A stretch of DNA of 64,000 nucleotides from Macrostomum lignano (lineage: Eukaryota), in the NCBI GenBank assembly GCA_002269645.1, contig NIVC01001291.1, positions 190,412 through 254,411 on the forward strand. Reading direction: 5' to 3'. Under the pieces are notes generated by a model. It ran no database searches and was not told where the DNA came from. It worked only from the letters and a program-made list of their open reading frames with translations. Position numbers and translations under genes: made by a program. Position 1 is the first letter of the stretch; the number at the start of each line of letters is the position of its first letter. Shown piece after piece: positions 14,901 to 53,429 of this stretch.

Positions 14901-15628
14901 GTGTGATTTTGATTGGTTGTCAGGTGAGCCACAGATTGTGATTTTGATTGGTTGTCAGGTGAGCCACAGCTTGTGATGTTGATTGGTTGTCAGGTGAGCC
15001 ACAGTGTGTGATTTTGATTGGTTGTCAGGTGAGCCACAGCTTGTGATTTTGATTGGTTGTCAGGTGAGCCACAGCTTGTGATTTTGATTGGTTGTCAGGT
15101 GTGCCACAGCTTGTGATGTTGATTGGTTGTCAGGTGAGCCACAGTGTGTGATTTTGATTGGTTGTCAGGTGAGCCACAGCTTGTGATGTTGATTGATTGT
15201 CAGGTGAGCCACAGCTTGTGATGTTGATTGGTTGTCAGGTGTGCCACAGTGTGTGATTTTGATTGGTTGTCAGGTGAGCCACAGCTTGTGATTTTGATCG
15301 GTTGTCAGGTGAGCCACAGCTTGTGATTTTGATTGGTTGTCAGGTGTGCCACAGCTTGTGATGTTGATTTATTGTCAGGTGTGCCACAGCTTGTGATTTT
15401 GATTGGTTGTAAGGTGAGCCACAGCTTGTGATTTTGATTGGTTGTCAGGTGAGCCACAGTGTGTGATTTTGATTGGTTGTCAGGTGTGCCACAGTGTGTG
15501 ATTTTGATTGGTTGTCAGGTGTGCCACAGCTTGTGATATTGATTTATTGTCAGGTGTGCCACAGCTTGTGATTTTGATTGGTTGTCAGGTGAGCCACAGC
15601 TTGTGATTTTGATTGGTTGTCAGGTGTG
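11920..15628. repeat. 35-bp satellite GTGATTTTGATTGGTTGTCAGGTGAGCCACAGCTT, about 106 copies
   Basis: Exact 35-bp period with a few alternating variants (GAG/GTG/TTG, CAGCTT/CAGTGT). A 770-bp higher-order duplication is visible as identical ORFs at 12225 and 12995. Confidence 0.98.
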
Positions 15629-17286: not shown

Positions 17287-17729
<443 letters not shown>

Positions 17730-18253
17730 GTACATAGATAGCACTCCAAGCGAACTCAGACAGTCAGCACCAAGTCCCAAAACTGCACCCAAACCCCTTT
17801 TCCCGGCTTCCAGGGATTCTGCAGCCAGTCTTGACTACAGCACCGGCAGCGGCGGCGGCAGCGGCGGCGGCAGCGGCAGAGGCGAAAACAGGATATCCCT
17901 TTTCCAGGAATTCGGCGTTAACGACCCCCTCACCGTGGAGATGGATTCGGACACGGCCGCCTTTCTGTAAGCCCCAAGCACAGCCCCCGCGCTAATGCGC
18001 CACTAAAAGGCATAAAACCGCTGCCGGCCCCGGCAAACAGCAAATTGGTGCCACTCCAACCGGATCGAATTGCCCACCTGTGCAAACAAGCCGTTAAAGC
18101 TTTCCCTAATCCTGTTTTGCCAACCAACACTAATTGGAGAGTCCGATTGCGTTCCAACAGATTGATGGGCAGATATTGAAAACGGGGATGCTTGAAGAGG
18201 GAAATATTGGGCTTGCTGAATAAACAAAAGGTATGGGATAGCATCGACTGCTG

Positions 18254-19290
18254 CTTTTGGTAGACACTCTACCAATGCTGATTTGGGTAGACACTCTACC
18301 AATGCTGTTTCGGGTAGACACTTTACCAATGCTGATTTGGGTAGACACTCTACCAATGCTGATTTAGGTAGACACTCTACCAATGCTGATATGGGTAGAC
18401 ACTCTACCAATGCTGATTTGGGTAGACACTCTACCAATGCTGATTTGGGTAGACACTCTACCAATGCTGATTTGGGTAGACACTCTACCAATGCTGATAT
18501 GGGTAGACACTCTACCAATGCTGATTTAGGTAGACACTCTACCAATGCTGATATGGGTACTGGTAAACACTCTAACAACGCTGATTTAGGTAGAAACTCT
18601 ACCAATGCTGATTTGGGTAGACACTACTCTACCAATGCTGATTTGGGTAGACACTCTACCAATGCTGATTTGGGTACTGGTAAACACTCTACCAATGCTG
18701 ATTTGGGTACTGGTGGACACTCTACCAATGCTGATTTGGGTACTGGTAGACACTCTACCAATGCTGATTTGGGTAGACACTACTCTACCAATGCTGATTT
18801 GGGTAGACACTCTACCAATGCTGATTTGGGTAGACACTCTACCAATGCTGATTTGGGTAGACACTCTACCAATGCTGATTTGGGTAGACACTCTACCAAT
18901 GCTGATTTGGGTAGACACTCTACCAATGCTGATTTGGGTAGACACTGCTCTACCAATGCTGATTTGGGTAGACACTCTACCAATGCTGTTTCGGGTAGAC
19001 ACTCTACCAATGCTGTTTCGGGTAGACACTCTACCAATGCTGTTTCGGGTAGACACTCTACCAATGCTTTTTGGGTACTGGTAGACACTCTACCAATGCT
19101 GATTTGGGTAGACACTACTCTGCCAATGCTGTTTCGGGTAGACACTCTACCAATGCTGATTTGGGTAGACACTACTCTACCAATGCTGATTTGGGTAGAC
19201 ACTCTACCAATGCTGATTTGGGTAGACACTACTCTACCAATGCTGATTTGGGTAGACACTCTACCGATGCTGTTTTGGGTAGACACTCTA
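18254..19290. repeat. 27-bp minisatellite GGGTAGACACTCTACCAATGCTGATTT with 30- and 33-bp variants
   Basis: About 36 copies; insertions of ACT or GGTACT; each unit contains the inverted repeat GGTAG-ACACT-CTACC. Confidence 0.96.
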
Positions 19291-20068
19291 CTGTTCAGGC
19301 AAGTCAGGTCAGTAGGATTTCTATTTGTTCCAAAGAAGTTCAAAGCAAAACTGCCTGTCAGTCAACCGCCTGCGGATATTTGCAGTTCAGCTGAAAATTT
19401 TTGTTTTCTTTTTTAGCGAAAAGAAAACACTCGAAGAGGTGAAGAAAAGTCAAAGGGGATTTAAAAAGAGTGCCGAATGAGGCCACAGGAAGGAATTTGA
19501 CTACACAGCCGGCCAGCTTCCCAGTTTGGAATTGGGAGCCGCGCGAGGTGCCTGTCGCGAATTTCTTCGCCCTAGCAACAACTGCGGCAGTGCACTTTCC
19601 AGCCGTTTGCCGCTCGGTGAAACAGCTTCGAAATCGAAGCGAAGTGTACAGAACAGAGCCTCATCTCCCATCCCCCACCCCAGGCTTGGAATGCGGCCAT
19701 TCCATTCTGCTCCCCAATGCCTCCTGTCCTCCTTCCTCTTCAGTCTGAGACAATTGCGTCCACTTATGACTTTTTTCGTTCCTTTTTTGTGCCTGTTTCT
19801 GCCTGTCTAACCTGGCCGACCCGGCATAGCAACAGTTGCTGTGCGCTGTGCTGCGCAGATATTAGAGCCCCCCCCACCATGCCTAACTATTAGGAAAGTA
19901 AGCTGCAAGTATGCAAGCTGTATCCACTTGAACCTGGCTGCTCGGGTCTGATATTTATAGATATACAACAAATGGGATATTTAGTGGCGCTGATAAAACA
20001 GTGTTGGGGCTTCAAAACTGAGTTTGGGGTTCTAGTTTCACCGTCCTAAATGGAGCTGAAACACAAAT

Positions 20069-21190
20069 AGGCGGCCAACAACAGGAACTAGGTGGCCAAC
20101 AACAGGAACCAGGCTGTCAACAACAGGAACTGAGCAACCAACAACAGGAACTAGGCTGTCAACAACAGGAACTGAGCAACCAACAACAGGAACTAGACAA
20201 CCAACAACAGGAACTAGGCGGCCAACAACAGGAACTAGGCGGCCAACAACAGGAACTAGGCAACCAACACCAGGAACTAGGCAACCAACACCAGGAACTA
20301 GGCAGTCAACAACAGGAACTAGGCGGCCAAGAACAGGAACTAGGCTGTCAACAACAGGAACTGAGCAGCCAACAACAGGAACTGAGCAATCAACAACAGG
20401 AACTGAGCAGCCAACAACAGGAACCTGAGCAGCCAACAACAGGAACCTGAGCAATCAACAACAGGAACTAGGCAGCCAACAACAGGAACTGGGCAATCAA
20501 CAACAGGAACTAGGCAGCCAACAACAGGAACTAGGCAGCCAACAACAGGAACTAGGCAACCAACACCAGGAACTAGGCAACCAACAACAGGAACTAGGCA
20601 ACCAACAACAGGAACTAGGCAACCAACACCAGGAACTAGGCAACCAACAACAGGAACTAGGCAACCAACAACAGGAACTAGGCGGCCAACAACAGGAGCT
20701 AGGCAACCAACAACAGGAACTAAGCAACCAACAACAGGAACTAGGCAACCAACAACAGGAACTAGGCAGCCAACAACAGGAACTAGGCAACCAACAACAG
20801 GAACTAGGCAGCCAACAACAGGAACTAAGCAACCAACAACAGGAACTAGGCAGCCAACAACAGGAACTAGGCAACCAACACCAGGAACTAGGCAACCAAC
20901 AACAGGAACTAGGCAACCAACAACAGGAACTAGGCAACCAACACCAGGAACTAGGCAACCAACAACAGGAACTAGGCAACCAACAACAGGAACTAGGCGG
21001 CCAACAACAGGAGCTAGGCAACCAACAACAGGAACTAAGCAACCAACAACAGGAACTAGGCAACCAACAACAGGAACTAGGCAGCCAACAACAGGAACTA
21101 GGCAACCAACAACAGGAACTAGGCAGCCAACAACAGGAACTAGGCAACCAACAACAGGAACTAGGCAACCAACAACAGGAACTGGGCAAT
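20069..21190. repeat. 21-bp minisatellite CAACAACAGGAACTAGGCAAC, about 53 copies
   Basis: 21-bp period; two 22-bp units near 20421-20450. Confidence 0.96.
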
Positions 21191-24649: not shown

Positions 24650-24985
24650 GTCATTAGGCTGGGCAACTCAAGCCACATTGAAGAGCCCCCAAAGCGTGCC
24701 TACTGGTCATTAGGCTGGGCAACTCAAGCCGCATTGAAGAGCCCCCAAAGCGTGCCTACTGGTCATTAGGCTGGGCAACTCAAGCCGCATTGAAGAGCCC
24801 CCAAAGCGTGCCTACTGTTCATTAGGCTGGGCAACTCAAGCCGCATTGAAGAGCCCCCAAAGCGTGCCTACTGGTCATTAGGCTGGGCAACTCAAGCCGC
24901 ATTGAAGAGCCCCCAAAGCGTGCCTACTGGTCATTAGGCTGGGCAACTCAAGCCGCATTGAAGAGCCCCCAAAGCGTGCCTACTG
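24650..24985. repeat. 56-bp tandem repeat, six near-perfect copies
   Basis: TCATTAGGCTGGGCAACTCAAGCC starts at 24651, 24707, 24763, 24819, 24875 and 24931; no spacers. Confidence 0.97.
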
Positions 24986-27980: not shown

Positions 27981-28404
27981 CCACCTCACTTCGCACACAC
28001 ACCTCACTCCTCACCCCCACCTCACTCCGCACACCCACCTCACTCCACACGCCCACCTCACTCCGCACACCCACCTCACTCCTCACGCCCACCTCACTCC
28101 ACACGCCCACCTCACTCCGCACACCCACCTCACTCCACACGCCCACCTCACTCCGCACACGCACCTCACTCCGCACACCCACCTCACTCCACACGCCCAC
28201 CTCACTCTACACACCCACCTCACTCCGCACACCCACCTCACTCCACACGCCCACCTCACTCTACACACCCACCTCACTCCGCACACCCACCTCACTCCAC
28301 ACGCCCACCTCACTCCGCACACCCACCTCACTCCTTACGCCCACCTCATTCCACACACCCACCTCACTCCGCACACCTACCTCACTCCACACACCCACCT
28401 CACT
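27981..28404. repeat. 18-bp intronic minisatellite CACCTCACTCCGCACACC
   Basis: About 23 copies inside the intron between SCHIP1 exons C and D. Confidence 0.95.
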
Positions 28405-32490: not shown

Positions 32491-34404
32491 ATGCTTTCTA
32501 ACACACGAAGCATGGAATCGGCAGAAGCGGCGCTGGCTGCTCTGGTCGATGACGACCCTGACGCCTTCATGCGAGCTTTGAAGCCGGACCTGTCGGGAAG
32601 GCTCGCCCAGCCTCTGGTCGACGTGACCGAAAGCCACGAGATCCGGTGTCGCTTGCCGAGAAGTCGCCGAAAGTGGGGCTTCGTCAGTCTGCAGTTCGGA
32701 TACGCGATCCACCTGGCGATTCTGCTGCAGTCCGTGCGAGTGTTCGAGGCTCTGTTGGAAGACAGCTCCGAGCACGCGGCTCAGCTCGAGCTCGACGGCA
32801 GCACCGTTGTACACAGTCTGGCTCGCTGCCAGATGTACGCGCCGAGGTTCAAGCGAGCCAAGCGTCTGGAGACGGCGCTCCTCTCGACGCTGAGTAGAGA
32901 GCCTCGTCTGCTAGACAGGCTGGTCACTCAGGAGGACTCGAGCGGTCTCCGACCTCTGGAGGCGTGCGTGAAGTTCGCTGCATTCCGACTGGCCCGCAAG
33001 ATGTTGCACCTGCCGAACTACCTGTTGAAATCGGAGACTCGATCCGGCGGCTGGGCCGTCTGTCTCTACGACCTCACCGACTACGACCTGTGTCACGGGA
33101 GCCGGTGCAACTCGAGTCCTCTGCACCTGCTCACCTATGTAGCGTCGAGTCAGGTCGAGTCGCTCAAGAAGTCCAAGCTGATGGAGGACCCTCTCATCCG
33201 ACAGTGGCTTCGGTTGACTAACCGTCAGACTCGAGCGATCACATTTCTGAGGCTGCTGGTGATGAGCGTTCCAACATCGGTATTTCTTCTTACAGCCGTG
33301 AACGAATCAATCATGCTGACGGTGGCCTGTTTTGGCAACCTCATTCACTGCAACCGAGCAACATTTTCTGCTGCAAAATCATTAGGATACAATGCGAGCG
33401 TTTTGAGCAATTTAACCATTTATTTTACGTTCTTTTATCAGCAAAAAATAAAGTCAAAAAGCTGTGCAGAATTTCTTCAATCCATCGACATAAACTTTCT
33501 GGTGATTAGTCTCGTGACTGCCTTCATGTGCGTCACTGCGGCTCTGAAGACTGGATTCTCTGCGCTTGAACACGAAAATAAGAAAAAAATATTGACTGCG
33601 GACAACTGGTCGCTGCTTGACAGATTTGTTCGACGGGCCATCTTTGATTTTTATCACTTTGTTGCAATCGCGAGTGGCATCTGCTTTCTAGTTGTCGCGA
33701 CGTTCCTGAGGTCCGATAATTTCTATGAAAATTTGTATCCAAGCGACCAGAGCAACGGTAGAGCTGTGGAGCAACTGTTCATTGGGTCCAACACTCTCTT
33801 CATCGCGTTCACGCTGCTACACTTTGCGCAGTACATGGAGATCGTGACGAAGTCGGTCGGGAAGCTCTTCTTCACCTTCCACTGCATGCTGTCCAGCTTC
33901 CTGGCCGCGCTGCCGCTGCTGTTCTACTGGATCATTCTCTTCAGCCTGGACTTCTTCATCTTGGTTGACTCGCCCGACTTCGAGACCGGCCTGTTGTCGC
34001 TCTACTCGTCGGTCAAGGTCATCCTCAACATGATCACCTTCAGCTTGGACAGCGTGATGGTTCTCATCATCCACGTGCTGTTCTTCGTGTTTGTGGGCCT
34101 CAACCTGCTGAACTTTCTCATCGCGTTCGTCACGGAGACGTTCCAGCGGTGCATCAGTGACTTCGATGTGGCCTTCGACCTGCTGCGACTTCTGACAGCG
34201 TTGAAGACGTTTCGGTACTTCGGGTTCGTGTTTCGGTGCAAGCACTGGCTCGAGGTGAGGTCTCACGGCAGCTGTAGACGGCGGGTTATCGTTGAGGTTG
34301 TTCAACCGGTGTTCAAGAGGCTGTACTCGAAAAGTGAATTCAAGCGGAAGCAGCAAAATTTTAGATCCTGTAGTCGAGAAATGGAATCTTTGCCGGATAT
34401 TTAA
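32491..34404 (+). CDS. TRPV-like cation channel, type A copy 1 (intact, 637 aa)
   Basis: Degenerate ankyrin repeats (DGSTVVHSLA; DSSGLRPLEAC), TRPV linker LYDLTDYD, six hydrophobic segments, pore helix ending ILNM, and S6 LNLLNFLIAFVTETF typical of TRPV LNMLIALMGET. Confidence 0.85.
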   Translation: MLSNTRSMESAEAALAALVDDDPDAFMRALKPDLSGRLAQPLVDVTESHEIRCRLPRSRRKWGFVSLQFGYAIHLAILLQSVRVFEALLEDSSEHAAQLELDGSTVVHSLARCQMYAPRFKRAKRLETALLSTLSREPRLLDRLVTQEDSSGLRPLEACVKFAAFRLARKMLHLPNYLLKSETRSGGWAVCLYDLTDYDLCHGSRCNSSPLHLLTYVASSQVESLKKSKLMEDPLIRQWLRLTNRQTRAITFLRLLVMSVPTSVFLLTAVNESIMLTVACFGNLIHCNRATFSAAKSLGYNASVLSNLTIYFTFFYQQKIKSKSCAEFLQSIDINFLVISLVTAFMCVTAALKTGFSALEHENKKKILTADNWSLLDRFVRRAIFDFYHFVAIASGICFLVVATFLRSDNFYENLYPSDQSNGRAVEQLFIGSNTLFIAFTLLHFAQYMEIVTKSVGKLFFTFHCMLSSFLAALPLLFYWIILFSLDFFILVDSPDFETGLLSLYSSVKVILNMITFSLDSVMVLIIHVLFFVFVGLNLLNFLIAFVTETFQRCISDFDVAFDLLRLLTALKTFRYFGFVFRCKHWLEVRSHGSCRRRVIVEVVQPVFKRLYSKSEFKRKQQNFRSCSREMESLPDI

Positions 34405-36045: not shown

Positions 36046-37984
36046 TTATTGCCTTTTAAAAGCCGGTTGAACAACTTCAACGACCACCCGACGTCTGCAG
36101 ATGCCATGAGATCTCACTTCTAGCCAGTGATTGCACCGGGGTACAAACTTAAAGTACCGAAACGTCTTCAGCGCTGCCAGAAGCCGCAGCAGGTCGAACG
36201 CCACGTCGAAATCGCTGATGCACCGCTGGAACGTCTCTGTGACAGACGCTATGAGAAAGTTCAACAGGTTGATGCTGACAAACATAAAGAATGCGAAATG
36301 AATAATGAGAACGATGGAACTGTCTAGGTTGAAGTTGATCATGTTCAGTATGACTCTCACGGATGAATACAAAGATAGAGAACCAGTGCTAAAGTCTTGC
36401 GTGTCAACCAGGATGAAGAAAATCAAGCTAAACAAAATTATCCAAAAGTAAAGCAGAGGCATGGAAGCCAGGAAACTTGTCATCATGCTGTGAAATATGA
36501 AAAACAGTTTCCCAATGCCTCTTGATACAATCTCCAAATACTGGGAATACTGCAAGAGAACGGATGCGATAAATAAAGCATTCGAGCCGAGAAACAGCTG
36601 CTCAGTGACCCAGTGACCGCTGGTTGATGGGGAGCAGTGTCCGGTACCACCCTGAGTAGTTCGCCCAAAAGTTGGTGAACAGAACAACTAGGAAGCAGGA
36701 GCTGCTGCCAATAGTTACTGCCAGGTAAACGTCGAACATGGTTCTACGGACGAATCGGTGCGTGGGTCGCCAGTTGTCGGCTGTGAGAAGCTTCATCCGC
36801 TGACTCCGCTCCAGGAGCCGCAGAACAATCTTCACGCAGGCTACGATGACTTTGAAGACCAGAACCGCAAAAATCACACAGGTGTTTACAAATATTGCCT
36901 CGCCGATTCTTGAGCACTTAGTCTGCTTAACTGTCTGATCATTAAACACTTTCCAAAAGAGGGTTGAGTTCAACAACACGGTCTCATTGAAGCCTAGCTT
37001 CTCTGCGGCTGTGAAGGTGGCTTGATTACAGTGAATCAGCAAACCAAAACTTGATACAAGTAGCATTACATATTGGCTAAACACCGTCAACAAAAATGCT
37101 GCTGGCGGTATGCCCATCACCAACAGCCTCAGAAATGTGATCGCTCGAGTCTGACGGTACGTCAACCGAAGCCACTGTCGGATGAGAGGGTCCTCCATCA
37201 GCTTGGACTTCTTGAGTGACTCGACCTGACTCGACGCTACATAGGTGAGCAGGTGCAGAGGACTCGAGTTGCACCGGCTCCCGTGACACAGGTCGTAGTC
37301 GGAGAGGTCGTAGAGACGGACGGCCCAGCCGCCGGATCGAGTCTCCGATTTCAACAGATAGTTCGGCAGGTGCAACATCTTGCGGGCCAGTCGGAATGCA
37401 GCGAACTTCACGCACGCCTCCAGAGGTCGGAGACCGCTCGAGTCCTCCTGAGTGACCAGCCTGTCTAGCAGACGAGGCTCTCTACTCAGCGTCGAGAGGA
37501 GCGCCGTCTCCAGACGCTTGGCTCGCTTGAACCTCGGCGCGTACATCTGGCAGCGAGCCAGACTGTGTAAAACGGTGCTGCCGTCGAGCTCGAGCTGAGC
37601 CGCGTGCTCGGAGCTGTCTTCCAACAGAGCCTCGAACACTCGCACGGACTGCAGCAGAATCGCCAGGTGGATCGCGTATCCGAACTGCAGACTGACGAAG
37701 CCCCACTTTCGGCGACTTCTCGGCAAGCGACACCGGATCTCGTGGCTTTCGGTCACGTCGACCAGAGGCTGGGCGAGCCTTCCCGACAGGTCCGGCTTCA
37801 AAGCTCGCATGAAGGCGTCAGGGTCGTCATCGACCAGAGCAGCCAGCGCCGCTTCTGCCGATTCCATGCTTTGTTTCCGTTCCCGAATCATGTTTGCACT
37901 TTTTGGTGCCTTCTGCTGCGTTTCGATTTGCTTTAAAATTTCTCGCATACCGAAGTCAGCCAGAAGTGTTTTATCTGCGTCCAC
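36046..37984 (-). pseudogene. TRPV-like channel type B copy 1, frameshifted (net -2 bp near 36613)
   Basis: Split into ORFs 36602-37984 and 36046-36687. It has CCCAGTGACCGC where intact B2/B3 have CCCAGCCAGACCGC. Confidence 0.8.
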
Positions 37985-38755
37985 TATATTTGCCTTTCCA
38001 CTTTGAAACAGTGTAAGAGAATAAGAGTCATGGTCTATGAGAACCGCTCCCTGGCCTTCAGCCCGTCTGTCAGTAGCCCAGCTGACTTCCCAAACGGCTC
38101 TGAATGCAGTGCTCCCCTGAATTCCTGGGCAACCCCTGGGCGTTGTCTTCCTATTTAGACTTGAGTTTAGCAGCTGTCCTCTCAGGCGCTCCAGTTGAAC
38201 GGGTCCGATATTCAGTTTTAAACTCGTATTAGTCTCGAGCTATTGAATGAGTTCGTTTTCAAATTTAAAGTAGAATTTACCACTAACACACATCGGCTTC
38301 GTCGAAAGTTACTAGGATCTGGAGACAGAAATACAATATGCTTTATCACTCAATCGAAAGTGTTGTATTGATGGTTGTCTCGGGGTGGTTTGGTAGGTCT
38401 TCAGAATCCCATCGCTGCCACCAATGTTGTACCTGTGCTACCTACTCGGACAGCGCCAGCACAGTTAAATTGACTTTTCGTCCTTTTGATCGGGAGTCTT
38501 CAATCGTAGCGTAGCTAGTGCTGCCACCAGTTCCTTCAGGTCTCGGCTTTCGATGAGGTGGGCTTCCCGTCGGAACAAAATAAACAAGTAAACGAACTCA
38601 GCACCGCGTGCAGATTTGAAGATTAACGAACAAGGCGTCTGGTCAGCAGATCCAGCTGGGCCCAGTGGGTGGTTGGGAAGGCGATGTAGGCCTCCTTTAG
38701 ACTTGGGCGTCTATGTTTAGTCAGGCGTATTACAGACGGAAACATGGTAGCAGAA

Positions 38756-38962
38756 GAACTGAAACTGAAAGTGAAATCCTTGACGGAAACAAGGGTGAGG
38801 GGGCCCCGTACATATATGCTGGGAATCCCCATTGCACCATTGTGCGCCAGATAGCGTGACTCAGTATCTATTTTTAGAACTGACGTCACCTCCCGCCTTT
38901 GAGAAGGCCGGGGTCGTGATCCCCGTAAACACAGGCCAGCGAGTGTAGTAAACATGTTTACT
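38756..38962. promoter_or_regulatory. Motif cluster at the centre of the divergent B1/A2 spacer (IRF-, kB-, AP-1-, CRE- and Forkhead-type)
   Basis: GAAACTGAAAGTGAAA 38761-38776; GGGAATCCCC 38821-38830; TGACTCA 38857-38863; TGACGTCA 38881-38888; GTAAACA 38925-38931; palindrome AGTAAACATGTTTACT 38947-38962. Function is inferred from motif matches only. Confidence 0.5.
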
Positions 38963-39755
38963 CCAGGACTCCAGGACTTTTGGACTCCAGGAAAACACGG
39001 CTTTTCATGTGACTTGCTCAAATGACAGAGGAAAACAGGACCACCAATAGTGACCTCAAGACTGGAGTAAAAGGAAGAGCAGACCACAGCACAGATGTCC
39101 ATGGCTGCAAACACGGCTTGGAGATTGGAGCTCGTAGACAAGTTTTCGTCGGTTTTTAAAACAGTCAAGAAATTTGTTGCTAGACTTGAGCTATTGCCAG
39201 TTCCCTTGATTGAATCTTGATTATCGAGATTTAAACTTAAATTTGCATGCTAAAAAGCTCAAATACGGAGATGCCTTTCTGGAACCGGATCGTTACTCAA
39301 TTCAACGGCTAAAAAATTCAACCATAGTTTTTAATATCATATACGTGCAAATTTTTGCTGGAGAGCCGTTGCTTTTCAGACTGGCTCCCAAAAAAGTTCC
39401 ACTGCAATAGAGACTCAGGCTATGCAGAAATGAGTTACATAGCACTATTGGGCTACTTTCTTCGTCAAATCAATTCATTTGATAATGTTGTTTGCTCTGC
39501 GCCCTCGAGACCATACCAAGGACAACTAAGGACCATACTTGCCTGACTGTATCGCCAGAACTGACTCTAGTTCAGTGGCCTTTGTTTGTTCAGGCTGGTC
39601 AAATGTTTTGGAGAAAAATGTACACTTGTGACCAGCGATTCCCTGTATATTGATTTGCTGGCAGCTATACTTTGCAAAGCTCATAAAAGCAGCGCACCAG
39701 AAAACTAACAGAGATCGGACTGATTCTGCGGCAAACTGTTCAGCTGCACAAAGTA

Positions 39756-41773
39756 ATGGGCGAAGGGATCCCGGCTACTAACGACTTTATCAGAGTTCGC
39801 TCCAGCAACAGAATTTCACTTCTTGCAGGTAATCGGGTGCTGCCGAGTCAGAACGATACAAACTTGAAAGAGTTGTTCAACATGGAATCAGCAGAGGCGG
39901 CGCTGGCTGCTCTGGTCGATGACGACCCTGACGCCTTCATGCGAGCTTTGAAGCCGGACCTGTCGGGAAGGCTCGCCCAGCCTCTGGTCGACGTGACCGA
40001 AAGCCACGAGATCCGGTGTCGCTTGCCGAGAAGTCGCCGAAAGTGGGGCTTCGTCAGTCTGCAGTTCGGATACGCGATCCACCTGGCGATTCTGCTGCAG
40101 TCTGTGCGAGTGTTCGAGGCTCTGTTGGAAGACAGCTCCGAGCACGCGGCTCAGCTCGAGCTCGACGGCAGCACCGTTGTACACAGTCTGGCTCGCTGCC
40201 AGATGTACGCGCCGAGGTTCAAGCGAGCCAAGCGTCTGGAGACGGCGCTCCTCTCGACGCTGAGTAGAGAGCCTCGTCTGCTAGACAGGCTGGTCACTCA
40301 GGAGGACTCGAGCGGTCTCCGACCTCTGGAGGCGTGCGTGAAGTTCGCTGCATTCCGACTGGCCCGCAAGATGTTGCACCTGCCGAACTATCTGTTGAAA
40401 TCGGAGACTCGATCCGGCGGCTGGGCCGTCCGTCTCTACGACCTCACCGACTACGACCTGTGTCACGGGAGCCGGTGCAACTCGAGTCCTCTGCACCTGC
40501 TCACCTATGTAGCGTCGAGTCAGGTCGAGTCGCTCAAGAAGTCCAAGCTGATGGAGGACCCTCTCATCCGACAGTGGCTTCGGTTGACGTACCGTCAGAC
40601 TCGAGCGATCACATTTCTGAGGCTGTTGGTAATGAGCGTTCCAACATCGGTATTTCTTCTCACAGCCGTGAACGAATCAATCATGCTGACGGTGGCCTGT
40701 TTTGGCAACCTCATTCACTGCAACCGAGCAACATTTTCTGCTGCAAAATCATTAGGATTCAATGCCAGCGTTTTGAGCAATTTAACCATTTATTTTAAGT
40801 TTTTTTATCAGCAAAAAATAAAGTCAAAAAGCTGTGCAGAATTTCTTGAATCCGTCGACATAAACTTTCTGGTGATTAGTCTCGTGACTGCCTTCATGTG
40901 CGTCACTGCGGCTCTGAAGACTGGATTCTCTGCGCTTGAACACAAAAATAAGAAAAAATATTGACTGCGGACAACTGGTCGCTGCTTGACAGATTTGTTC
41001 GACGGGCCATCTTTGATTTTTATCACTTTGTTGCAATCGCGAGTGGCATCTGCTTTCTAGTTGTCGCGACGTTCCTGAGGTCCGATAATTTCTATGAAAA
41101 TTTGTATCCAAGCGACCAAAGCAACGGTAGAGCTGTGGAGCAACTGTTCATTGGGTCCAACACTCTCTTCATCGCGTTCACACTGCTGCACTTTGCGCAG
41201 TACATGGAGATCGTGACGAAGTCGGTCGGGAAGCTCTTCTTCACCTTCCACTGCATGCTGTCCAGCTTCCTGGCCGCGCTGCCGCTGCTGTTCTACTGGA
41301 TCATTCTCTTCAGCCTGGACTTCTTCATCTTGGTCGACTCGCCCGACTTCGAGACCGGCCTGTTGTCGCTCTACTCGTCGGTCAAGGTCATCCTCAACAT
41401 GATCACCTTCAGCTTGGACAGCGTAATGGTTCTCATCATCCACGTGCTGTTCTTCGTGTTTGTGGGCCTCAACCTGCTGAACTTTCTCATCGCGTTCGTC
41501 ACGGAGACGTTCCAGCGGTGCATCAGCGACTTCGATGTGGCCTTCGACCTGCTGCGACTTCTGACAGCGTTGAAGACGTTTCGGTACTTCGGGTTCGTGT
41601 TTCGGTGCAAGCACTGGCTCGAGGTGAGGTCTCACGGCAGCTGTAGACGTCGGGTTATCGTTGATGTTGTTCAACCGGTGTTCAAGAGGCTGTACTCGAA
41701 AAGTGAATTCAGGCGGAAGCAGCGAAATTTTAGATCCTGTAGTCGAGAGATGGAATCTTTGCCGGATATTTAA
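39756..41773 (+). pseudogene. TRPV-like channel type A copy 2, 1-bp frameshift in an A-run
   Basis: A6 at 40953-40958 versus A7 at 33583-33589 in A1; split into ORFs 39756-40964 and 40961-41773. Confidence 0.78.
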
Positions 41774-43408: not shown

Positions 43409-45349
43409 TTATTGCCTTTTAAAAGCCGGTTGAACAACTTCAACGACCACCCGACGTCTGCAGATGCCATGAGATCTCACTTCTAGCCAGTGATTGCACC
43501 GGGGTACAAACTTAAAGTACCGAAACGTCTTCAGCGCTGCCAGAAGCCGCAGCAGGTCGAACGCCACGTCGAAATCGCTGATGCACCGCTGGAACGTCTC
43601 CGTGACAGACGCTATGAGAAAGTTCAACAGGTTGATGCTGACAAACATAAAGAATGCGAAATGAATAATGAGAACGATGGAACTGTCTAGGTTGAAGTTG
43701 ATCATGTTCAGTATGACTCTCACGGATGAATACAAAGATAGAGAACCAGTGCTAAAGTCTTGCGTGTCAACCAGGATGAAGAAAATCAAGCTAAACAAAA
43801 TTATCCAAAAGTAAAGCAGAGGCATGGAAGCCAGGAAACTTGTCATCATGCTGTGAAATATGAAAAACAGTTTCCCAATGCCTCTTGATACAATCTCCAA
43901 ATACTGGGAATACTGCAAGAGAACGGATGCGATAAATAAAGCATTCGAGCCGAGAAACAGCTGCTCGGTGACCCAGCCAGACCGCTGGTTGATGGGGAGC
44001 AGTGTCCGGTACCACCCTGAGTAGTTCGCCCAAAAGTTGGTGAACAGAACAACTAGGAAGCAGGAGCTGCTGCCAATAGTTACTGCCAGGTAAACGTCGA
44101 ACATTGTTATACGGACGAATCGGTGCGTGGGTCGCCAGTTGTCGGCTGTGAGAAGCTTCATCCGCTGACTCCGCTCCAGGAGCCACAGAACAATCTTCAC
44201 GCAGGCTACGATGACTTTGAAGACCAGAACCGCAAAAATCACACAGGTGTTTACAAATATTGCCTCGCCGATTCTTGAGCACTTAGTCTGCTTAACTGTC
44301 TGATCATTAAACACTTTCCAAAAGAGGGTTGAGTTCAACAACACGGTCTCATTGAAGCCTAGCTTCTCTGCGGCTGTGAAGGTGGCTTGATTACAGTGAA
44401 TCAGCAAACCAAAACTTGATACAAGTAGCATTACATATTGGCTAAACACCGTCAACAAAAATGCTGCTGGCGGTATGCCCATCACCAACAGCCTCAGAAA
44501 TGTGATCGCTCGAGTCTGACGGTACGTCAACCGAAGCCACTGTCGGATGAGAGGGTCCTCCATCAGCTTGGACTTCTTGAGTGACTCGACCTGACTCGAC
44601 GCTACATAGGTGAGCAGGTGCAGAGGACTCGAGTTGCACCGGCTCCCGTGACACAGGTCGTAGTCGGAGAGGTCGTAGAGACGGACGGCCCAGCCGCCGG
44701 ATCGAGTCTCCGATTTCAACAGATAGTTCGGCAGGTGCAACATCTTGCGGGCCAGTCGGAATGCAGCGAACTTCACGCACGCCTCCAGAGGTCGGAGACC
44801 GCTCGAGTCCTCCTGAGTGACCAGCCTGTCTAGCAGACGAGGCTCTCTACTCAGCGTCGAGAGGAGCGCCGTCTCCAGACGCTTGGCTCGCTTGAACCTC
44901 GGCGCGTACATCTGGCAGCGAGCCAGACTGTGTAAAACGGTGCTGCCGTCGAGCTCGAGCTGAGCCGCGTGCTCGGAGCTGTCTTCCAACAGAGCCTCGA
45001 ACACTCGCACGGACTGCAGCAGAATCGCCAGGTGGATCGCGTATCCGAACTGCAGACTGACGAAGCCCCACTTTCGGCGACTTCTCGGCAAGCGACACCG
45101 GATCTCGTGGCTTTCGGTCACGTCGACCAGAGGCTGGGCGAGCCTTCCCGACAGGTCCGGCTTCAAAGCTCGCATGAAGGCGTCAGGGTCGTCATCGACC
45201 AGAGCAGCCAGCGCCGCTTCTGCCGATTCCATGCTTTGTTTCCGTTCCCGAATCATGTTTGCACTTTTTGGTGCCTTCTGCTGCGTTTCGATTTGCTTTA
45301 AAATTTCTCGCATACCGAAGTCAGCCAGAAGTGTTTTATCTGCGTCCAC
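43409..45349 (-). CDS. TRPV-like cation channel, type B copy 2 (intact)
   Basis: 646-aa ORF; same N-terminal block as type A, diverged TM region, S6 INLLNFLIASVTETF. First ATG near 45313; a pyrimidine-rich acceptor-like site lies just upstream. Confidence 0.85.
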   Translation of the reverse strand: MDADKTLLADFGMREILKQIETQQKAPKSANMIRERKQSMESAEAALAALVDDDPDAFMRALKPDLSGRLAQPLVDVTESHEIRCRLPRSRRKWGFVSLQFGYAIHLAILLQSVRVFEALLEDSSEHAAQLELDGSTVLHSLARCQMYAPRFKRAKRLETALLSTLSREPRLLDRLVTQEDSSGLRPLEACVKFAAFRLARKMLHLPNYLLKSETRSGGWAVRLYDLSDYDLCHGSRCNSSPLHLLTYVASSQVESLKKSKLMEDPLIRQWLRLTYRQTRAITFLRLLVMGIPPAAFLLTVFSQYVMLLVSSFGLLIHCNQATFTAAEKLGFNETVLLNSTLFWKVFNDQTVKQTKCSRIGEAIFVNTCVIFAVLVFKVIVACVKIVLWLLERSQRMKLLTADNWRPTHRFVRITMFDVYLAVTIGSSSCFLVVLFTNFWANYSGWYRTLLPINQRSGWVTEQLFLGSNALFIASVLLQYSQYLEIVSRGIGKLFFIFHSMMTSFLASMPLLYFWIILFSLIFFILVDTQDFSTGSLSLYSSVRVILNMINFNLDSSIVLIIHFAFFMFVSINLLNFLIASVTETFQRCISDFDVAFDLLRLLAALKTFRYFKFVPRCNHWLEVRSHGICRRRVVVEVVQPAFKRQ

Positions 45350-46120
45350 TATATTTGCCTTTCCACTTTGAAACAGTGTAAGAGAATAAGAGTCATGGTC
45401 TATGAGAACCGCTCCCTGGCCTTCAGCCCGTCTGTCAGTAGCCCAGCTGACTTCCCAAACGGCTCTGAATGCAGTGCTCCCCTGAATTCCTGGGCAACCC
45501 CTGGGCGTTGTCTTCCTATTTAGACTTGAGTTTAGCAGCTGTCCTCTCAGGCGCTCCAGTTGAACGGGTCCGATATTCAGTTTTAAACTCGTATTAGTCT
45601 CGAGCTATTGAATGAGTTCGTTTTCAAATTTAAAGTAGAATTTACCACTAACACACATCGGCTTCGTCGAAAGTTACTAGGATCTGGAGACAGAAATACA
45701 ATATGCTTTATCACTCAATCGAAAGTGTTGTATTGATGGTTGTCTCGGGGTGGTTTGGTAGGTCTTCAGAATCCCATCGCTGCCACCAATGTTGTACCTG
45801 TGCTACCTACTCGGACAGCGCCAGCACAGTTAAATTGACTTTTCGTCCTTTTGATCGGGAGTCTTCAATCGTAGCGTAGCTAGTGCTGCCACCAGTTCCT
45901 TCAGGTCTCGGCTTTCGATGAGGTGGGCTTCCCGTCGGAACAAAATAAACAAGTAAACGAACTCAGCACCGCGTGCAGATTTGAAGATTAACGAACAAGG
46001 CGTCTGGTCAGCAGATCCAGCTGGGCCCAGTGGGTGGTTGGGAAGGCGATGTAGGCCTCCTTTAGACTTGGGCGTCTATGTTTAGTCAGGCGTATTACAG
46101 ACGGAAACATGGTAGCAGAA

Positions 46121-46327
46121 GAACTGAAACTGAAAGTGAAATCCTTGACGGAAACAAGGGTGAGGGGGCCCCGTACATATATGCTGGGAATCCCCATTGC
46201 ACCATTGTGCGCCAGATAGCGTGACTCAGTATCTATTTTTAGAACTGACGTCACCTCCCGCCTTTGAGAAGGCCGGGGTCGTGATCCCCGTAAACACAGG
46301 CCAGCGAGTGTAGTAAACATGTTTACT
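46121..46327. promoter_or_regulatory. Second copy of the divergent-spacer motif cluster
   Basis: Same motifs at a +7365 offset (for example TGACGTCA at 46246). Confidence 0.5.
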
Positions 46328-47120
46328 CCAGGACTCCAGGACTTTTGGACTCCAGGAAAACACGGCTTTTCATGTGACTTGCTCAAATGACAGAGGAAAA
46401 CAGGACCACCAATAGTGACCTCAAGACTGGAGTAAAAGGAAGAGCAGACCACAGCACAGATGTCCATGGCTGCAAACACGGCTTGGAGATTGGAGCTCGT
46501 AGACAAGTTTTCGTCGGTTTTTAAAACAGTCAAGAAATTTGTTGCTAGACTTGAGCTATTGCCAGTTCCCTTGATTGAATCTTGATTATCGAGATTTAAA
46601 CTTAAATTTGCATGCTAAAAAGCTCAAATACGGAGATGCCTTTCTGGAACCGGATCGTTACTCAATTCAACGGCTAAAAAATTCAACCATAGTTTTTAAT
46701 ATCATATACGTGCAAATTTTTGCTGGAGAGCCGTTGCTTTTCAGACTGGCTCCCAAAAAAGTTCCACTGCAATAGAGACTCAGGCTATGCAGAAATGAGT
46801 TACATAGCACTATTGGGCTACTTTCTTCGTCAAATCAATTCATTTGATAATGTTGTTTGCTCTGCGCCCTCGAGACCATACCAAGGACAACTAAGGACCA
46901 TACTTGCCTGACTGTATCGCCAGAACTGACTCTAGTTCAGTGGCCTTTGTTTGTTCAGGCTGGTCAAATGTTTTGGAGAAAAATGTACACTTGTGACCAG
47001 CGATTCCCTGTATATTGATTTGCTGGCAGCTATACTTTGCAAAGCTCATAAAAGCAGCGCACCAGAAAACTAACAGAGATCGGACTGATTCTGCGGCAAA
47101 CTGTTCAGCTGCACAAAGTA

Positions 47121-49138
47121 ATGGGCGAAGGGATCCCGGCTACTAACGACTTTATCAGAGTTCGCTCCAGCAACAGAATTTCACTTCTTGCAGGTAATCG
47201 GGTGCTGCCGAGTCAGAACGATACAAACTTGAAAGAGTTGTTCAACATGGAATCAGCAGAGGCGGCGCTGGCTGCTCTGGTCGATGACGACCCTGACGCC
47301 TTCATGCGAGCTTTGAAGCCGGACCTGTCGGGAAGGCTCGCCCAGCCTCTGGTCGACGTGACCGAAAGCCACGAGATCCGGTGTCGCTTGCCGAGAAGTC
47401 GCCGAAAGTGGGGCTTCGTCAGTCTGCAGTTCGGATACGCGATCCACCTGGCGATTCTGCTGCAGTCTGTGCGAGTGTTCGAGGCTCTGTTGGAAGACAG
47501 CTCCGAGCACGCGGCTCAGCTCGAGCTCGACGGCAGCACCGTTGTACACAGTCTGGCTCGCTGCCAGATGTACGCGCCGAGGTTCAAGCGAGCCAAGCGT
47601 CTGGAGACGGCGCTCCTCTCGACGCTGAGTAGAGAGCCTCGTCTGCTAGACAGGCTGGTCACTCAGGAGGACTCGAGCGGTCTCCGACCTCTGGAGGCGT
47701 GCGTGAAGTTCGCTGCATTCCGACTGGCCCGCAAGATGTTGCACCTGCCGAACTACCTGTTGAAATCGGAGACTCGATCCGGCGGCTGGGCCGTCTGTCT
47801 CTACGACCTCACCGACTACGACCTGTGTCACGGGAGCCGGTGCAACTCGAGTCCTCTGCACCTGCTCACCTATGTAGCGTCGAGTCAGGTCGAGTCGCTC
47901 AAGAAGTCCAAGCTGATGGAGGACCCTCTCATCCGACAGTGGCTTCGGTTGACGTACCGTCAGACTCGAGCGATCACATTTCTGAGGCTGTTGGTAATGA
48001 GCGTTCCAACATCGGTATTTCTTCTCACAGCCGTGAACGAATCAATCATGCTGACGGTGGCCTGTTTTGGCAACCTCATTCACTGCAACCGAGCAACATT
48101 TTCTGCTGCAAAATCATTAGGATTCAATGCCAGCGTTTTGAGCAATTTAACCATTTATTTTAAGTTTTTTTATCAGCAAAAAATAAAGTCAAAAAGCTGT
48201 GCAGAATTTCTTGAATCCGTCGACATAAACTTTCTGGTGATTAGTCTCGTGACTGCCTTCATGTGCGTCACTGCGGCTCTGAAGACTGGATTCTCTGCGC
48301 TTGAACACAAAAATAAGAAAAAATATTGACTGCGGACAACTGGTCGCTGCTTGACAGATTTGTTCGACGGGCCATCTTTGATTTTTATCACTTTGTTGCA
48401 ATCGCGAGTGGCATCTGCTTTCTAGTTGTCGCGACGTTCCTGAGGTCCGATAATTTCTATGAAAATTTGTATCCAAGCGACCAAAGCAACGGTAGAGCTG
48501 TGGAGCAACTGTTCATTGGGTCCAACACTCTCTTCATCGCGTTCACACTGCTGCACTTTGCGCAGTACATGGAGATCGTGACGAAGTCGGTCGGGAAGCT
48601 CTTCTTCACCTTCCACTGCATGCTGTCCAGCTTCCTGGCCGCGCTGCCGCTGCTGTTCTACTGGATCATTCTCTTCAGCCTGGACTTCTTCATCTTGGTC
48701 GACTCGCCCGACTTCGAGACCGGCCTGTTGTCGCTCTACTCGTCGGTCAAGGTCATCCTCAACATGATCACCTTCAGCTTGGACAGCGTAATGGTTCTCA
48801 TCATCCACGTGCTGTTCTTCGTGTTTGTGGGCCTCAACCTGCTGAACTTTCTCATCGCGTTCGTCACGGAGACGTTCCAGCGGTGCATCAGCGACTTCGA
48901 TGTGGCCTTCGACCTGCTGCGACTTCTGACAGCGTTGAAGACGTTTCGGTACTTCGGGTTCGTGTTTCGGTGCAAGCACTGGCTCGAGGTGAGGTCTCAC
49001 GGCAGCTGTAGACGTCGGGTTATCGTTGATGTTGTTCAACCGGTGTTCAAGAGGCTGTACTCGAAAAGTGAATTCAGGCGGAAGCAGCGAAATTTTAGAT
49101 CCTGTAGTCGAGAGATGGAATCTTTGCCGGATATTTAA
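47121..49138 (+). pseudogene. TRPV-like channel type A copy 3, same 1-bp frameshift as copy 2
   Basis: A6 at 48318-48323; split into ORFs 47121-48329 and 48326-49138. Confidence 0.78.
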
Positions 49139-53222: not shown

Positions 53223-53429
53223 GAACTGAAACTGAAAGTGAAATCCTTGACGGAAACAAGGGTGAGGGGGGCCCGTACATATATGCTGGGAATCCCCATT
53301 GCACCATTGTGCGCCAGATAGCGTGACTCAGTATCTATTTTTAGAACTGACGTCACCTCCCGCCTTTGAGAAGGCCGGGGTCGTGGTCCCCGTAAACACA
53401 GGCCAGCGAGTGTAGTAAACATGTTTACT
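53223..53429. promoter_or_regulatory. Third copy of the divergent-spacer motif cluster
   Basis: TGACGTCA 53348-53355 and palindrome 53414-53429; all motifs intact. Confidence 0.5.

Follow-up and report, generated by a model that had tools for sequence, protein, structure and literature searches.

We studied a 64-kb stretch of DNA (the window) with a tandem gene array and assign a probability of roughly 0.6 to the following joint reading: the genes encode divergent TRPV channels with a glycosylated, probably disulfide-closed S1-S2 cap, and the array retains three old versions of the S1-S4 region amid gene conversion. The array consists of seven intronless copies of three types (A1-A3, B1-B3, C1), arranged in tandem with alternating orientations and a period of 7365 bp. 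The encoded channels comprise about 600 aa. The copies are listed below, where "loop" denotes the S1-S2 segment from its first to its second conserved cysteine (Cys1, Cys2).

32512-34404, + strand: gene A1; intact and intronless, 630 aa from MESAEAAL (open reading frame and homology)
36046-37867, - strand: gene B1; frameshifted by a 2-nt deletion; loop 36914-37030
39882-41773, + strand: gene A2; frameshifted by a 1-nt deletion in an A-run near 40958; loop 40719-40835
43409-45232, - strand: gene B2; intact; loop 44279-44395
47247-49138, + strand: gene A3; same frameshift as A2; loop 48084-48200
50774-52597, - strand: gene B3; intact; loop 51644-51760
54325-56121, + strand: gene C1; intact; loop 55162-55278, with an extra NYS sequon at +35

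A1 has a second in-frame ATG at 32491, i.e., 7 codons upstream of the MESAEAAL start; homology to the paralogues begins at the MESAEAAL ATG (32512). Three of the seven copies are frameshifted (B1, A2, A3) and each type keeps at least one intact copy. Compared with the intact copies, the frame breaks amount to the loss of 1 or 2 nt, which rules out an intron or alternative exon as their cause. Rfam and tRNA scans of the 64-kb window returned nothing. Within A1, we distinguish the following parts.

32512-33256, + strand: N-terminal cytoplasmic part with a short ankyrin-type region, beta-hairpin linker and pre-S1; homogenised across A/B/C
33232-33348, + strand: S1 helix and its hydrophobic extension, aa 241-279 (AF2 helix 227-278, hydropathy, family alignment)
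33349-33465, + strand: S1-S2 extracellular linker, Cys280 to Cys318, C-x37-C (translation)
33391-33399, + strand: sequon N294-A-S at +14 (translation); lineage-specific
33409-33417, + strand: sequon N300-L-T at +20 (translation); family-wide
33362-33783, + strand: block that diverges between A and C (DNA alignment); the loop after CNRATF, S2, S2-S3 linker, S3 and S3-S4 loop
33709-33771, + strand: S3-S4 extracellular loop; length varies by type, and type B has an NYS sequon here

The S1 extension ends immediately before Cys1, whose codon occupies 33349-33351 (Cys2: 33463-33465). The initial annotation was placed on 33349-33780. Since this interval starts with the first base of the Cys1 codon and stops at the end of the S3-S4 loop, it spans the S1-S2 loop, S2, the S2-S3 linker, S3 and the S3-S4 loop, and it coincides with the A-versus-C divergent block at 33362-33783.

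The assignment to the TRPV subfamily had been proposed from the letters and holds, by a family profile match and a fold match. Direct searches with the A/B/C proteins were empty: Pfam yields no family even at E-values up to 1, phmmer finds no PDB sequence at E up to 10, a word-index protein collection has no match for a single protein or for a 38-sequence alignment, and a metagenome scan finds no relative. However, phmmer retrieves 171 distant relatives (best E 1.2e-18) that match over the N-terminal and membrane parts. These are uncharacterised proteins of 550-700 aa in which ankyrin and Ion_trans signals are weak; with a cutoff of E 0.01, Ion_trans is found in 15/38 and Ank_2 in 9/38 aligned members. 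Their identity to the array proteins is 17-22% over the A2 alignment and about 25% in the phmmer-matched stretches. One of them is a protein of the nemertean Lineus longissimus, annotated only as 'uncharacterized'. Another relative (P0002) is a lone intronless open reading frame on an ENA contig.

A profile of 38 sequences including A/B/C matches TRPV6 (E 8e-48), TRPV5 (2e-41) and TRPV3/4 (about 1e-37). The AF2 model was computed from the family alignment (pLDDT 77.9, pTM 0.76), while a model with only the four window paralogues aligned was unusable (pLDDT 37.5). The top 50 Foldseek matches of the former are all TRPV1/2/3/5/6 (probability 1.00, TM 0.54-0.61, about 630 columns), led by TRPV6/5/3/1 with TM about 0.6 at 13-16% identity. 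The model provides helices for S1-S6, a pore helix (493-504), a hairpin (172-187) and a C-terminal strand (592-599). About 240 aa precede S1, with some 3-4 modelled helix pairs at residues 65-165. The S6 motif LLNxLIA aligns to TRPV6 'LMLNLLIAMM', and its N534, L536, I537 and A538 are (near-)invariant in the family. The Trp of the TRP helix is absent: in a transitive alignment, TRPV6 W583 corresponds to 'l' in the family and to F555 in the array proteins. This Trp closes the 12-residue TRP fingerprint, of which at least 9 residues are kept by 95% of TRPs (PMC9242649). Since the array proteins alone match nothing in Pfam or PDB, the case for TRPV membership depends on a profile in which relatives dominate and on a model that was computed from their alignment. 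On these grounds, we take the array proteins to be highly divergent TRPV-type channels, where 'TRPV-type' spans TRPVL and TRPV proper. The searches thus uncover a TRPV-type gene family that is missed by direct queries of Pfam, PDB sequences and a word index.

Among solved structures, TRPV5/6 are the best-scoring relatives and the top fold matches, and like the array proteins they have a long S1-S2 linker that harbours an N-glycosylation site. That is, the linker of TRPV5/6 carries N358/N357 and touches the pore region of the neighbouring subunit (PMC5972805; bioRxiv 10.1101/434902). The earlier statement that canonical TRPVs have a short S1-S2 loop is correct for TRPV1-4 but not for TRPV5/6 with their extended N-glycosylated linker (PMC5972805; bioRxiv 10.1101/434902). 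The contact of the TRPV5/6 linker with the neighbour's S5-pore loop lies where a turret Cys of the family aligns. The similarity has limits: with about 25-30 aa, the linker of TRPV5/6 is shorter, and it lacks the Cys pair; the TRPV6 sequon is about 6 residues off the family's sequon column; and the full set of six ankyrin repeats preceded by an N-terminal helix, as in TRPV5/6, is not matched, the profile aligning only from about TRPV6 residue 164. In the filter, TRPV6 'FLTIID' aligns with 'mlNmvd' in the family, 'ILNMIT' in A/C and 'ILNMIN' in B, such that the Ca2+-selectivity Asp541 (rat D541) is replaced by T in A/C and N in B (transitive alignment). The uncharacterised relatives share the S1-S2 sequon and Cys with the array proteins, and we compare them to invertebrate TRPV-like channels (TRPVL, invertebrate TRPV subfamilies), which are treated by Morini et al. 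2022 (PMC9664204) and in the nomenclature of Himmel & Cox.

Next, we consider the loop sequences. The translated A1 loop (33349-33465) reads CNRATFSAAKSLGYNASVLSNLTIYFTFFYQQKIKSKSC; those of A2/A3 differ from it by Y13F and T26K only. The B1-B3 loops are identical in all three copies and read CNQATFTAAEKLGFNETVLLNSTLFWKVFNDQTVKQTKC, and the C1 loop is CNRATFAAAFRAGYNTSSLSNTTLYHEIFNSQSVKNYSC. The reported spacing of 38 residues between the two Cys is true for all translated copies (7/7), and all of them likewise show the sequons at +14 (NAS/NET/NTS) and +20 (NLT/NST/NTT). Identities of 18/39 (A-B) and 22/39 (A-C), counting both Cys, agree with the 17/38 and 21/38 given before. Across A/B/C, 16/39 loop columns are invariant, and the chance that random placement renders all five scaffold positions invariant is 0.008 (a post hoc figure). 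The variable positions cluster between the conserved scaffold residues (+9-11, +25-27, +29-30, +35-37). Depending on the boundaries, the linker measures 38 residues (Cys to Cys) or about 60 (alignment) and contains 2-4 sequons. In types A and C, the hydrophobic S1 extension contributes a third Cys (C273). The S3-S4 loop indeed differs between types in both sequence and length, with 3 additional residues in B and 5 fewer in C.

The profile match to TRPV6/5 and the full-length superposition on TRPVs identify the loop as the extracellular S1-S2 linker, as had been proposed, and its hydropathy stays below the level of a membrane span. A membrane-embedded or re-entrant loop is unlikely given 19-residue hydropathy means below about 1.0 between the two Cys. 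Within the family, the sequon density per 100 aa is 3.77 in the S1-S2 loop (1.40 expected from its composition) versus 0.42 in the cytoplasmic N-terminus; a 9-fold enrichment of this kind cannot be reconciled with a loop that is buried or cytosolic. N-glycosylation of the S1-S2 loop is thus very likely, judging from sequon statistics. A sequon is present at the +20 column in 87/115 relatives and at the +14 column in 7/115. By this alignment, the +20 sequon and Cys2 are old family features, i.e., inherited from wider invertebrate TRPV-like channels rather than invented at the array locus, and only Cys1 and the +14 sequon are specific to the array lineage. This also marks the N-glycosylated S1-S2 linker known from TRPV5/6 as ancient and broadly distributed.

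Model confidence is lowest in the linker (pLDDT 46-68), with short low-confidence helices at 283-290, 295-298 and 301-310. The arrangement we propose for this N-glycosylated extracellular cap is as follows. Cys280 would be located where S1 ends on the outer side and Cys318 within the initial turn of S2; a disulfide between the two most likely seals, at its base, a 37-residue hairpin composed of short helices. Both conserved sequons would come to lie at the hairpin tip, the sole stretch that is at least about 12-14 residues away from both helices. According to the Nilsson-von Heijne distance rule, only this tip should be reachable by the oligosaccharyltransferase, which would explain the fixed sequon positions.

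Indirect support for a disulfide-pinned loop, as suggested by the initial annotation, comes from Cys parity and covariation among 115 relatives. Here, the Cys2 column holds a Cys in 102/115 proteins and a column in the pore turret in 94/115, such that most relatives show a single linker Cys matched by one S5-pore turret Cys. If the turret Cys is present, the number of linker Cys is odd in 81 proteins and even in 13; if it is absent, odd and even numbers occur in 6 and 13 proteins, respectively (Fisher p 3e-6, uncorrected for phylogeny, with 19/113 proteins breaking the rule). That is, lineages without turret Cys, including the array lineage, usually carry either two linker Cys or none, and they occur in several separate clades. 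The turret column aligns between rat TRPV6 P516 and D517 and thereby adjoins TRPV5 Q513/T514, which are the residues contacting the S1-S2 loop (bioRxiv 10.1101/434902). We read the parity pattern as a switch of the disulfide partner: the array lineage would have lost the turret Cys and gained Cys1, which moves the bond into the linker. Many invertebrate TRPV-like channels may hence possess an inter-subunit linker-turret disulfide, and an intra-linker bond may have taken its place several times.

Two other views of these cysteines deserve weighing. Cys1 and Cys2 might not be bonded to each other but serve as free redox-sensing thiols or find their partner in C273 or in the equivalent Cys of an adjacent subunit. 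The three Cys between S1 and S2 of types A/C would allow for this, with C273 as the true partner of one of them, as would the poor modelling of the linker and the observation that Cys2 of most relatives seems to pair outside the linker, namely with the turret Cys. Yet the S1-S2 region of type B contains just two Cys, and type B lacks the turret Cys. In A/B/C, the S3-S4, turret and post-filter loops provide no further extracellular Cys, and exactly two linker Cys flank the sequon in several independent turret-less lineages. Free thiols are furthermore uncommon in oxidising extracellular loops. We thus regard unpaired or differently paired cysteines as quite improbable. An extension of the partner switch is also conceivable, in which the S1-S2 linker of most relatives is tied to the neighbour's turret by disulfides (four staples per tetramer), and in which the array lineage, by breaking this tie, freed its S1-S4 versions from the pore, such that A, B and C, with assembly and pore parts held identical by conversion, could co-assemble as combinatorial sensors. 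We consider this chain of events unlikely as a whole.

We then compared the types along the gene. The N-terminal ~740 nt show 97-100% DNA identity among A/B/C (dS 0.01-0.03, GC3 0.76), and their 15 variable sites are distributed reticulately; e.g., columns 9 and 510 feature all four allele combinations. Between A and C, the divergent block has sharp breakpoints at both of its edges in the DNA alignment: pS is 0.72-0.87 within the block, 0-0.06 in the adjacent S1, S4-S5/S5, pore and S6, and 0.23 in the transitional S4. GC3 follows the same partition (0.46-0.54 in the A and C block, 0.76-0.86 in the homogenised parts). These data show that A, B and C represent three ancient versions of the S1-S4 block and that gene conversion keeps the N-terminus of all three types, as well as the pore half of A and C, near-identical. 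It is thus not the loop that forms the variable unit, as had been assumed; the types differ in the whole S1-S4 block.

Concerted evolution with conversion-resistant segments is general in tandem gene families, e.g., MHC and opsin arrays. The array resembles such cases in its near-identical flanking coding sequence, sharp breakpoints, reticulate variants and raised GC3 in converted parts. To our knowledge, no conversion-resistant sensor block of a TRP channel has been described, and literature searches, which were aimed at other questions, were also empty in this respect. Conversion can apparently homogenise the parts for assembly and pore yet spare an S1-S4 sensor block as distinct old versions. 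Since the whole block differs, any functional differences between types most likely reside in the whole S1-S4 bundle, which in TRPVs holds 'top' and 'base' ligand pockets (PMC9149226). The main roles of the linker itself may be in folding, in surface expression and in contacting the pore vestibule. If true, the array would provide natural 'block-swap' chimeras for mapping S1-S4 sensing.

With this, the observations of the initial annotation stand, and its interpretation is supported in part, namely for TRPV identity, extracellular location, glycans and, indirectly, the disulfide, while the short canonical loop is restricted to TRPV1-4 and the diversification is not supported. It had described the loop as a small ligand-recognition domain under diversification. 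Such a process cannot be shown here, because synonymous sites are saturated (pS 0.75-1.0 over the whole block, 0.83-0.85 in the loop), which prevents a dN/dS estimate across the block. Nor is pN raised in the loop: it amounts to 0.31-0.39 compared to 0.47-0.54 in S2, 0.37-0.51 in the S2-S3 linker and 0.36-0.55 in the S3-S4 loop, which ranks the S1-S2 loop with the least diverged segments of the block. We find no evidence for active diversification of the loop itself, and an actively diversifying receptor domain is not what the finding shows.

The stronger version of this idea, namely positive selection on the variable sites that provides A, B and C with different ligand specificities, can point to the grouping of these sites between conserved scaffold residues and to known roles of the linker: in mouse TRPV3, the S1-S2 loop fills the top pocket of S1-S4 and is displaced by 2-APB, and D363 of the TRPV6 loop helps to recruit cations (PMC9149226). 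It can also draw on A1 versus A2, where the replacement:silent ratio is 5:2 in aa 280-360 and 5:15 elsewhere (p 0.065), with 4 replacement changes within or beside the loop. However, A2 and A3 are frameshifted, such that this cluster leans either to the diversification idea or to decay of A2. Further counterarguments are the saturation, a loop pN that is below the S2 values and does not exceed the ranges of the two other linkers, the absence of any change within the loops of B1/B2/B3, and two bulky glycans at the tip, which would shield much of the 37-residue hairpin. Selected ligand specificities are thus unlikely in our view. A neutral history, in which A, B and C are plain old paralogues with a block too diverged to pair for conversion, functionless differences and a partly decaying array, deserves some weight but remains doubtful. 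It accounts for the frameshifts in 3/7 copies and for S2, whose identity between types (22-25%) is about the level of any two hydrophobic helices; since conversion requires near-identity, a diverged core would protect itself without selection. On the other hand, scaffold residues are kept, pN is well below pS throughout the block, and A, B and C each retain intact copies. Where dS is still measurable (pore, S6 and C-terminus, A vs. B), omega values of 0.09-0.23 indicate genes under purifying selection, and an A-C block with sharp edges flanked by near-identity is easier to keep if its replacement is selected against.

Finally, we related the glycosylated cap to other TRP subfamilies. In the TRPM8 pore loop (Cys929-N934-Cys940), the glycan is flanked by a disulfide; like the array loop, it thus presents an extracellular N-glycan between two Cys, although in another subfamily and another loop, with no homology implied. 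TRPA1 and TRPC3/6 share an N-glycosylated first extracellular linker with the array proteins, again in other subfamilies and with no homology of the loops implied; there, this linker affects gating and trafficking, and the TRPA1 case is reported in PMC5281607. The polycystin/mucolipin domain of TRPP2/TRPML likewise forms a folded, glycosylated and disulfide-containing S1-S2 cap, but it comprises about 200 aa with a beta-sheet core, in contrast to the insert of 38-63 aa in the array, which is helical in the model. A polycystin-like ectodomain is ruled out by size and fold, in accordance with the fold search, which returns TRPVs rather than PKD2 or TRPML.

Between 32.5 and 56.1 kb lie seven intronless ORFs, each about 600 codons long, which alternate in orientation and form a tandem array with a period of 7365 bp. 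They encode TRPV-like channels of three types (A, B, C), as follows:

32512-34404, + strand: A1, ORF
36046-37867, - strand: B1, ORF with a 2-nt deletion (~36620), frame shifted
39882-41773, + strand: A2, ORF with a 1-nt deletion in an A-run (~40958), frame shifted
43409-45232, - strand: B2, ORF
47247-49138, + strand: A3, ORF with A2's 1-nt deletion (48323), frame shifted
50774-52597, - strand: B3, ORF
54325-56121, + strand: C1, ORF

Homology between the copies begins at the ATG of MESAEAAL, and tblastn found no further gene copies in the window. The A7 run that is intact in A1 (~33581-33587) is 1 nt shorter in A2 and A3, which leads to a stop after HKNKKKY. The frame breaks of A2, A3 and B1 could mark true pseudogenes or stem from assembly errors in homopolymers. 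Each repeat unit also contains, between its B and A genes, one 181-aa ORF (38623-39168, 45988-46533 and 53090-53635, - strand); it has no Pfam match and is probably not a gene.

The loop pattern described in the initial annotation is real and not due to chance. Translation places two Cys 38 residues apart (C-x37-C; Cys280 and Cys318 in A1) in the S1-S2 linker of 7/7 copies, and all copies carry N-x-S/T sequons at offsets +14 (NAS, NET, NTS) and +20 (NLT, NST, NTT) from the first Cys. Counted with both Cys, the A and B loops share 18/39 residues and the A and C loops 22/39, the same as the earlier 17/38 and 21/38, and the S3-S4 loop indeed varies between types in both sequence and length. Additional sequons are found at +35 of the type C loop (NYS), where S1 exits in types A and C (NES), and within the S3-S4 loop of type B (NYS). 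The annotated interval starts at 33349, the first base of the Cys280 codon, spans the S1-S2 loop, S2, the S2-S3 linker, S3 and the S3-S4 loop, and ends with the latter.

In our view, the main feature of the locus is its mosaic structure. The first ~740 nt of the CDS are 97-100% identical across A, B and C (dS 0.01-0.03). From S4 on, A and C are again 97-100% identical up to S6, followed by 78-92% in the C-terminal tail. Type B is saturated with respect to A and C from S1 through the pore and still strongly diverged in S6 and the C-terminus (dS 0.7-0.9). The A-C breakpoints are sharp, namely 33362 (four codons past the first Cys) and 33783 (S4 start), such that the annotated interval coincides exactly with the block in which A and C diverge; between A and B, the 5' breakpoint is located at ~33256-33266. 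Within the homogenised part, just 15 sites vary among the seven copies and their sharing is reticulate. That is, A1 has B-type bases at sites 9 and 15, B3 has A/C-type bases at sites 298 and 565, A2 and A3 are identical except at 510 and 550, at which A2 equals B, and all four combinations of alleles occur at sites 9 and 510. The homogenised N-terminal part (32512-33256 and equivalents) has a GC3 of 0.76 and the A/C pore half one of 0.86, compared to 0.46-0.54 for the A and C blocks and 0.60-0.65 for the unshared parts of B, a contrast that fits what GC-biased gene conversion would yield. These are the marks of ongoing gene conversion between direct and inverted copies, which halts at the S1-S4 block. 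A channel gene array with a sensor block spared by gene conversion is a modest but real novelty.

The loop had been read as a disulfide-pinned ligand-recognition domain under diversification. We compared pN and pS per segment based on Nei-Gojobori counts, and the computed values give this reading no support. For the loop, pS is 0.83-0.85 (whole block 0.71-1.0), i.e., saturated. Its pN of 0.31-0.39 is lower than in S2 (0.47-0.54) and does not rise above the ranges found for the S2-S3 linker (0.37-0.51) or the S3-S4 loop (0.36-0.55). The loop thus belongs to the better preserved segments of a block that is very old and divergent; furthermore, it is identical in B1, B2 and B3. Four replacement changes within or adjacent to the loop separate A1 from A2/A3, and for residues 280-360 we count 5 replacement to 2 silent changes versus 5 to 15 elsewhere (p 0.065). 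Since A2 and A3 are frameshifted, this excess of replacements may be decay. Taken together, the data lean against diversification of the loop.

Window proteins gave no match in Pfam, among PDB sequences or in a word-indexed protein collection. We searched 1.84 billion representatives exhaustively with phmmer (E up to 1e-3), which yielded 171 relatives of comparable length (best E 1.2e-18, ~25% identity in matched stretches), with matches covering the N-terminal and membrane halves alike. Some relatives show weak ankyrin and Ion_trans Pfam matches, and the sole named one, from the nemertean Lineus longissimus, is labelled 'uncharacterized protein'. A family profile built from A, B, C and 35 relatives matches TRPV6 (8e-48), TRPV5 (2e-41) and TRPV3/4 (~1e-37). 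Based on the family-profile alignment, AF2 produced a model with pLDDT 77.9 and pTM 0.76. When this model was compared to the PDB with Foldseek, each of the 50 best hits was a TRPV1/2/3/5/6 structure (~630 columns, TM 0.54-0.61). The label 'TRPV-like' therefore holds, i.e., the window proteins are very divergent TRPV-like channels, belonging either to TRPV proper or to a 'TRPVL' sister family. By transitive alignment, the filter Asp of TRPV6 is replaced by T (A/C) or N (B) and the TRP-helix Trp of TRPVs by F; just ~240 residues precede S1. A TRPV-like clade unseen by Pfam, PDB-sequence and word-index searches is likewise new, to a modest but real extent. One distant relative (P0002) is encoded by a single unbroken ORF (L001 3030-5009, a contig of ENA ERZ25069853), thus intronless genes may be common in the family. 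Among the precomputed Pfam matches at that locus is YVC1_C, which represents the C-terminal domain of Yvc1, a fungal TRP channel.

Judged by the family alignment, the loop scaffold is mostly inherited. The second Cys is present in 102/115 members and the +20 sequon in 87/115; the first Cys is found in 3/115, window proteins only, and the +14 sequon in 7/115. The supposed shortness of the S1-S2 loop in canonical TRPVs applies to TRPV1-4 only and not to TRPV5 and TRPV6, whose extended linker (with N358/N357) touches the adjacent subunit at its pore region (PMC5972805; bioRxiv 10.1101/434902). In rat TRPV6, linker residue D363 and E518 of the S5-pore loop help to form a cation recruitment site (PMC9149226). 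TRPV5/6 are thus a close precedent.

The N-terminus of TRPVs is cytoplasmic, so the S1-S2 linker faces outward. In the AF2 model, S1 extends to residue 278, directly followed by Cys280, and Cys318 occupies the first turn of S2, which begins at 314; the loop in between holds three short helices (283-290, 295-298, 301-310) with a pLDDT of just 46-68. Hydropathy from Cys to Cys is below ~1.0, versus 1.5-2.9 in membrane helices. Among 113 family members (window clade counted once), the loop shows 3.77 N-x-S/T per 100 aa, where 1.40 are expected from its own composition; the same members show 0.42 in the cytoplasmic N-terminus and 0.1-0.7 elsewhere. This is strong indirect evidence that the loop is lumenal/extracellular and the glycosylation site of the family. 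According to the Nilsson-von Heijne rule, oligosaccharyltransferase needs a distance of 12-14 or more residues from the helix. Only residues ~292-302 are at least 12-14 residues away from both the S1 end (278) and the S2 start (314), and both conserved sequons (294, 300) are inside this reachable stretch, which would offer a simple explanation for the constancy of their positions. In A1, the hydrophobic segment that follows pre-S1 (residues 241-279, 33232-33348) comprises ~38 residues, ~15 beyond a membrane span; the extra 16 residues NESIMLTVACFGNLIH are loop according to the family alignment and a continuation of the S1 helix according to the model.

A Cys in the S5-pore turret is present in 94/115 family members and absent from A, B and C. 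By far the commonest pattern (64 proteins) combines one linker Cys with one turret Cys, and a clade with three linker Cys retains the turret Cys. Turret-less proteins mostly have two linker Cys or zero. Of the proteins with the turret Cys, 81 have an odd and 13 an even number of linker Cys; of those that lack it, 6 have an odd and 13 an even number (Fisher p 3e-6, no phylogenetic correction). In a rough NJ tree that leaves out loop and turret columns, the turret Cys was lost in several separate clades; where this happened, the linker Cys either disappeared too or was joined by a second. Two-Cys relatives usually have a sequon between the Cys, which are spaced by 8 to 33 residues; the x37 spacing is thus fixed only among the close paralogues of the window. 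The turret Cys aligns between P516 and D517 of rat TRPV6, three residues from the position of TRPV5 Q513/T514, which touch the S1-S2 loop of the neighbour (bioRxiv 10.1101/434902). We infer that, for most family members, the Cys of the linker would be bonded to the turret Cys of the neighbouring subunit. In the window lineage, Cys280 would have taken over as partner, and the bond would lie within the linker, where it joins S1 and S2 at their outer ends; this C280-C318 pairing is to be read with the caveat that C273 is also present in types A and C. Such a switch of disulfide partner is probable and, as a novelty, modest but real.

The analysis establishes a TRPV-type fold, an outward sequon-rich loop, and concerted evolution around an S1-S4 block that is old and divergent. 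The linker most likely forms a glycosylated hairpin closed by C280-C318 and serves folding, surface expression and the interface to the pore vestibule. The TRPV S1-S4 bundle offers small molecules a 'top' pocket (S1, S1-S2 loop, S2, S3) and a 'base' pocket (S1-S4) (PMC9149226). If A, B and C differ in function at all, the differences most likely reside in the S1-S4 bundle as a whole. More speculatively, the types could co-assemble via their identical N-terminal parts and, for A and C, their pore parts.

On the minus strand, 61088-63349 contains a 753-aa ORF without Pfam match at E up to 0.01; its middle is Ser-rich and of low complexity, and a Cys/His-rich block (CANPSC...CRECRTFYCSQKCRSDHASAHGRSCC) resembles a MYND/HIT-type zinc finger. 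Just downstream of C1, a 14/29-nt unit CGACGTTTGCCAGC forms two arrays in opposite orientation about 1 kb apart (57276-57768 and 58746-59166), which yield spurious Cys/Arg/Pro-rich ORFs. Tandem repeats make up about one third of the window. The very large minisatellite at 640-6817 consists of ~410 copies of the 15-nt unit CTGACACTGACATCA, with 21- and 36-nt periods also readable; it shows strong GC and AT skew and is open in several frames, resulting in spurious ORFs of ~1600 aa. Further arrays are:

7290-7710: minisatellite, 20/40/60-nt
10053-10552: minisatellite, 18-nt
10592-11061: minisatellite, 20-nt
11927-15628: minisatellite, 35-nt x106
17287-17741: (TAGA)n
18249-19291: minisatellite, 27-nt
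20068-21189: minisatellite, 21-nt
24650-24985: minisatellite, 56-nt
27981-28404: minisatellite, 18-nt
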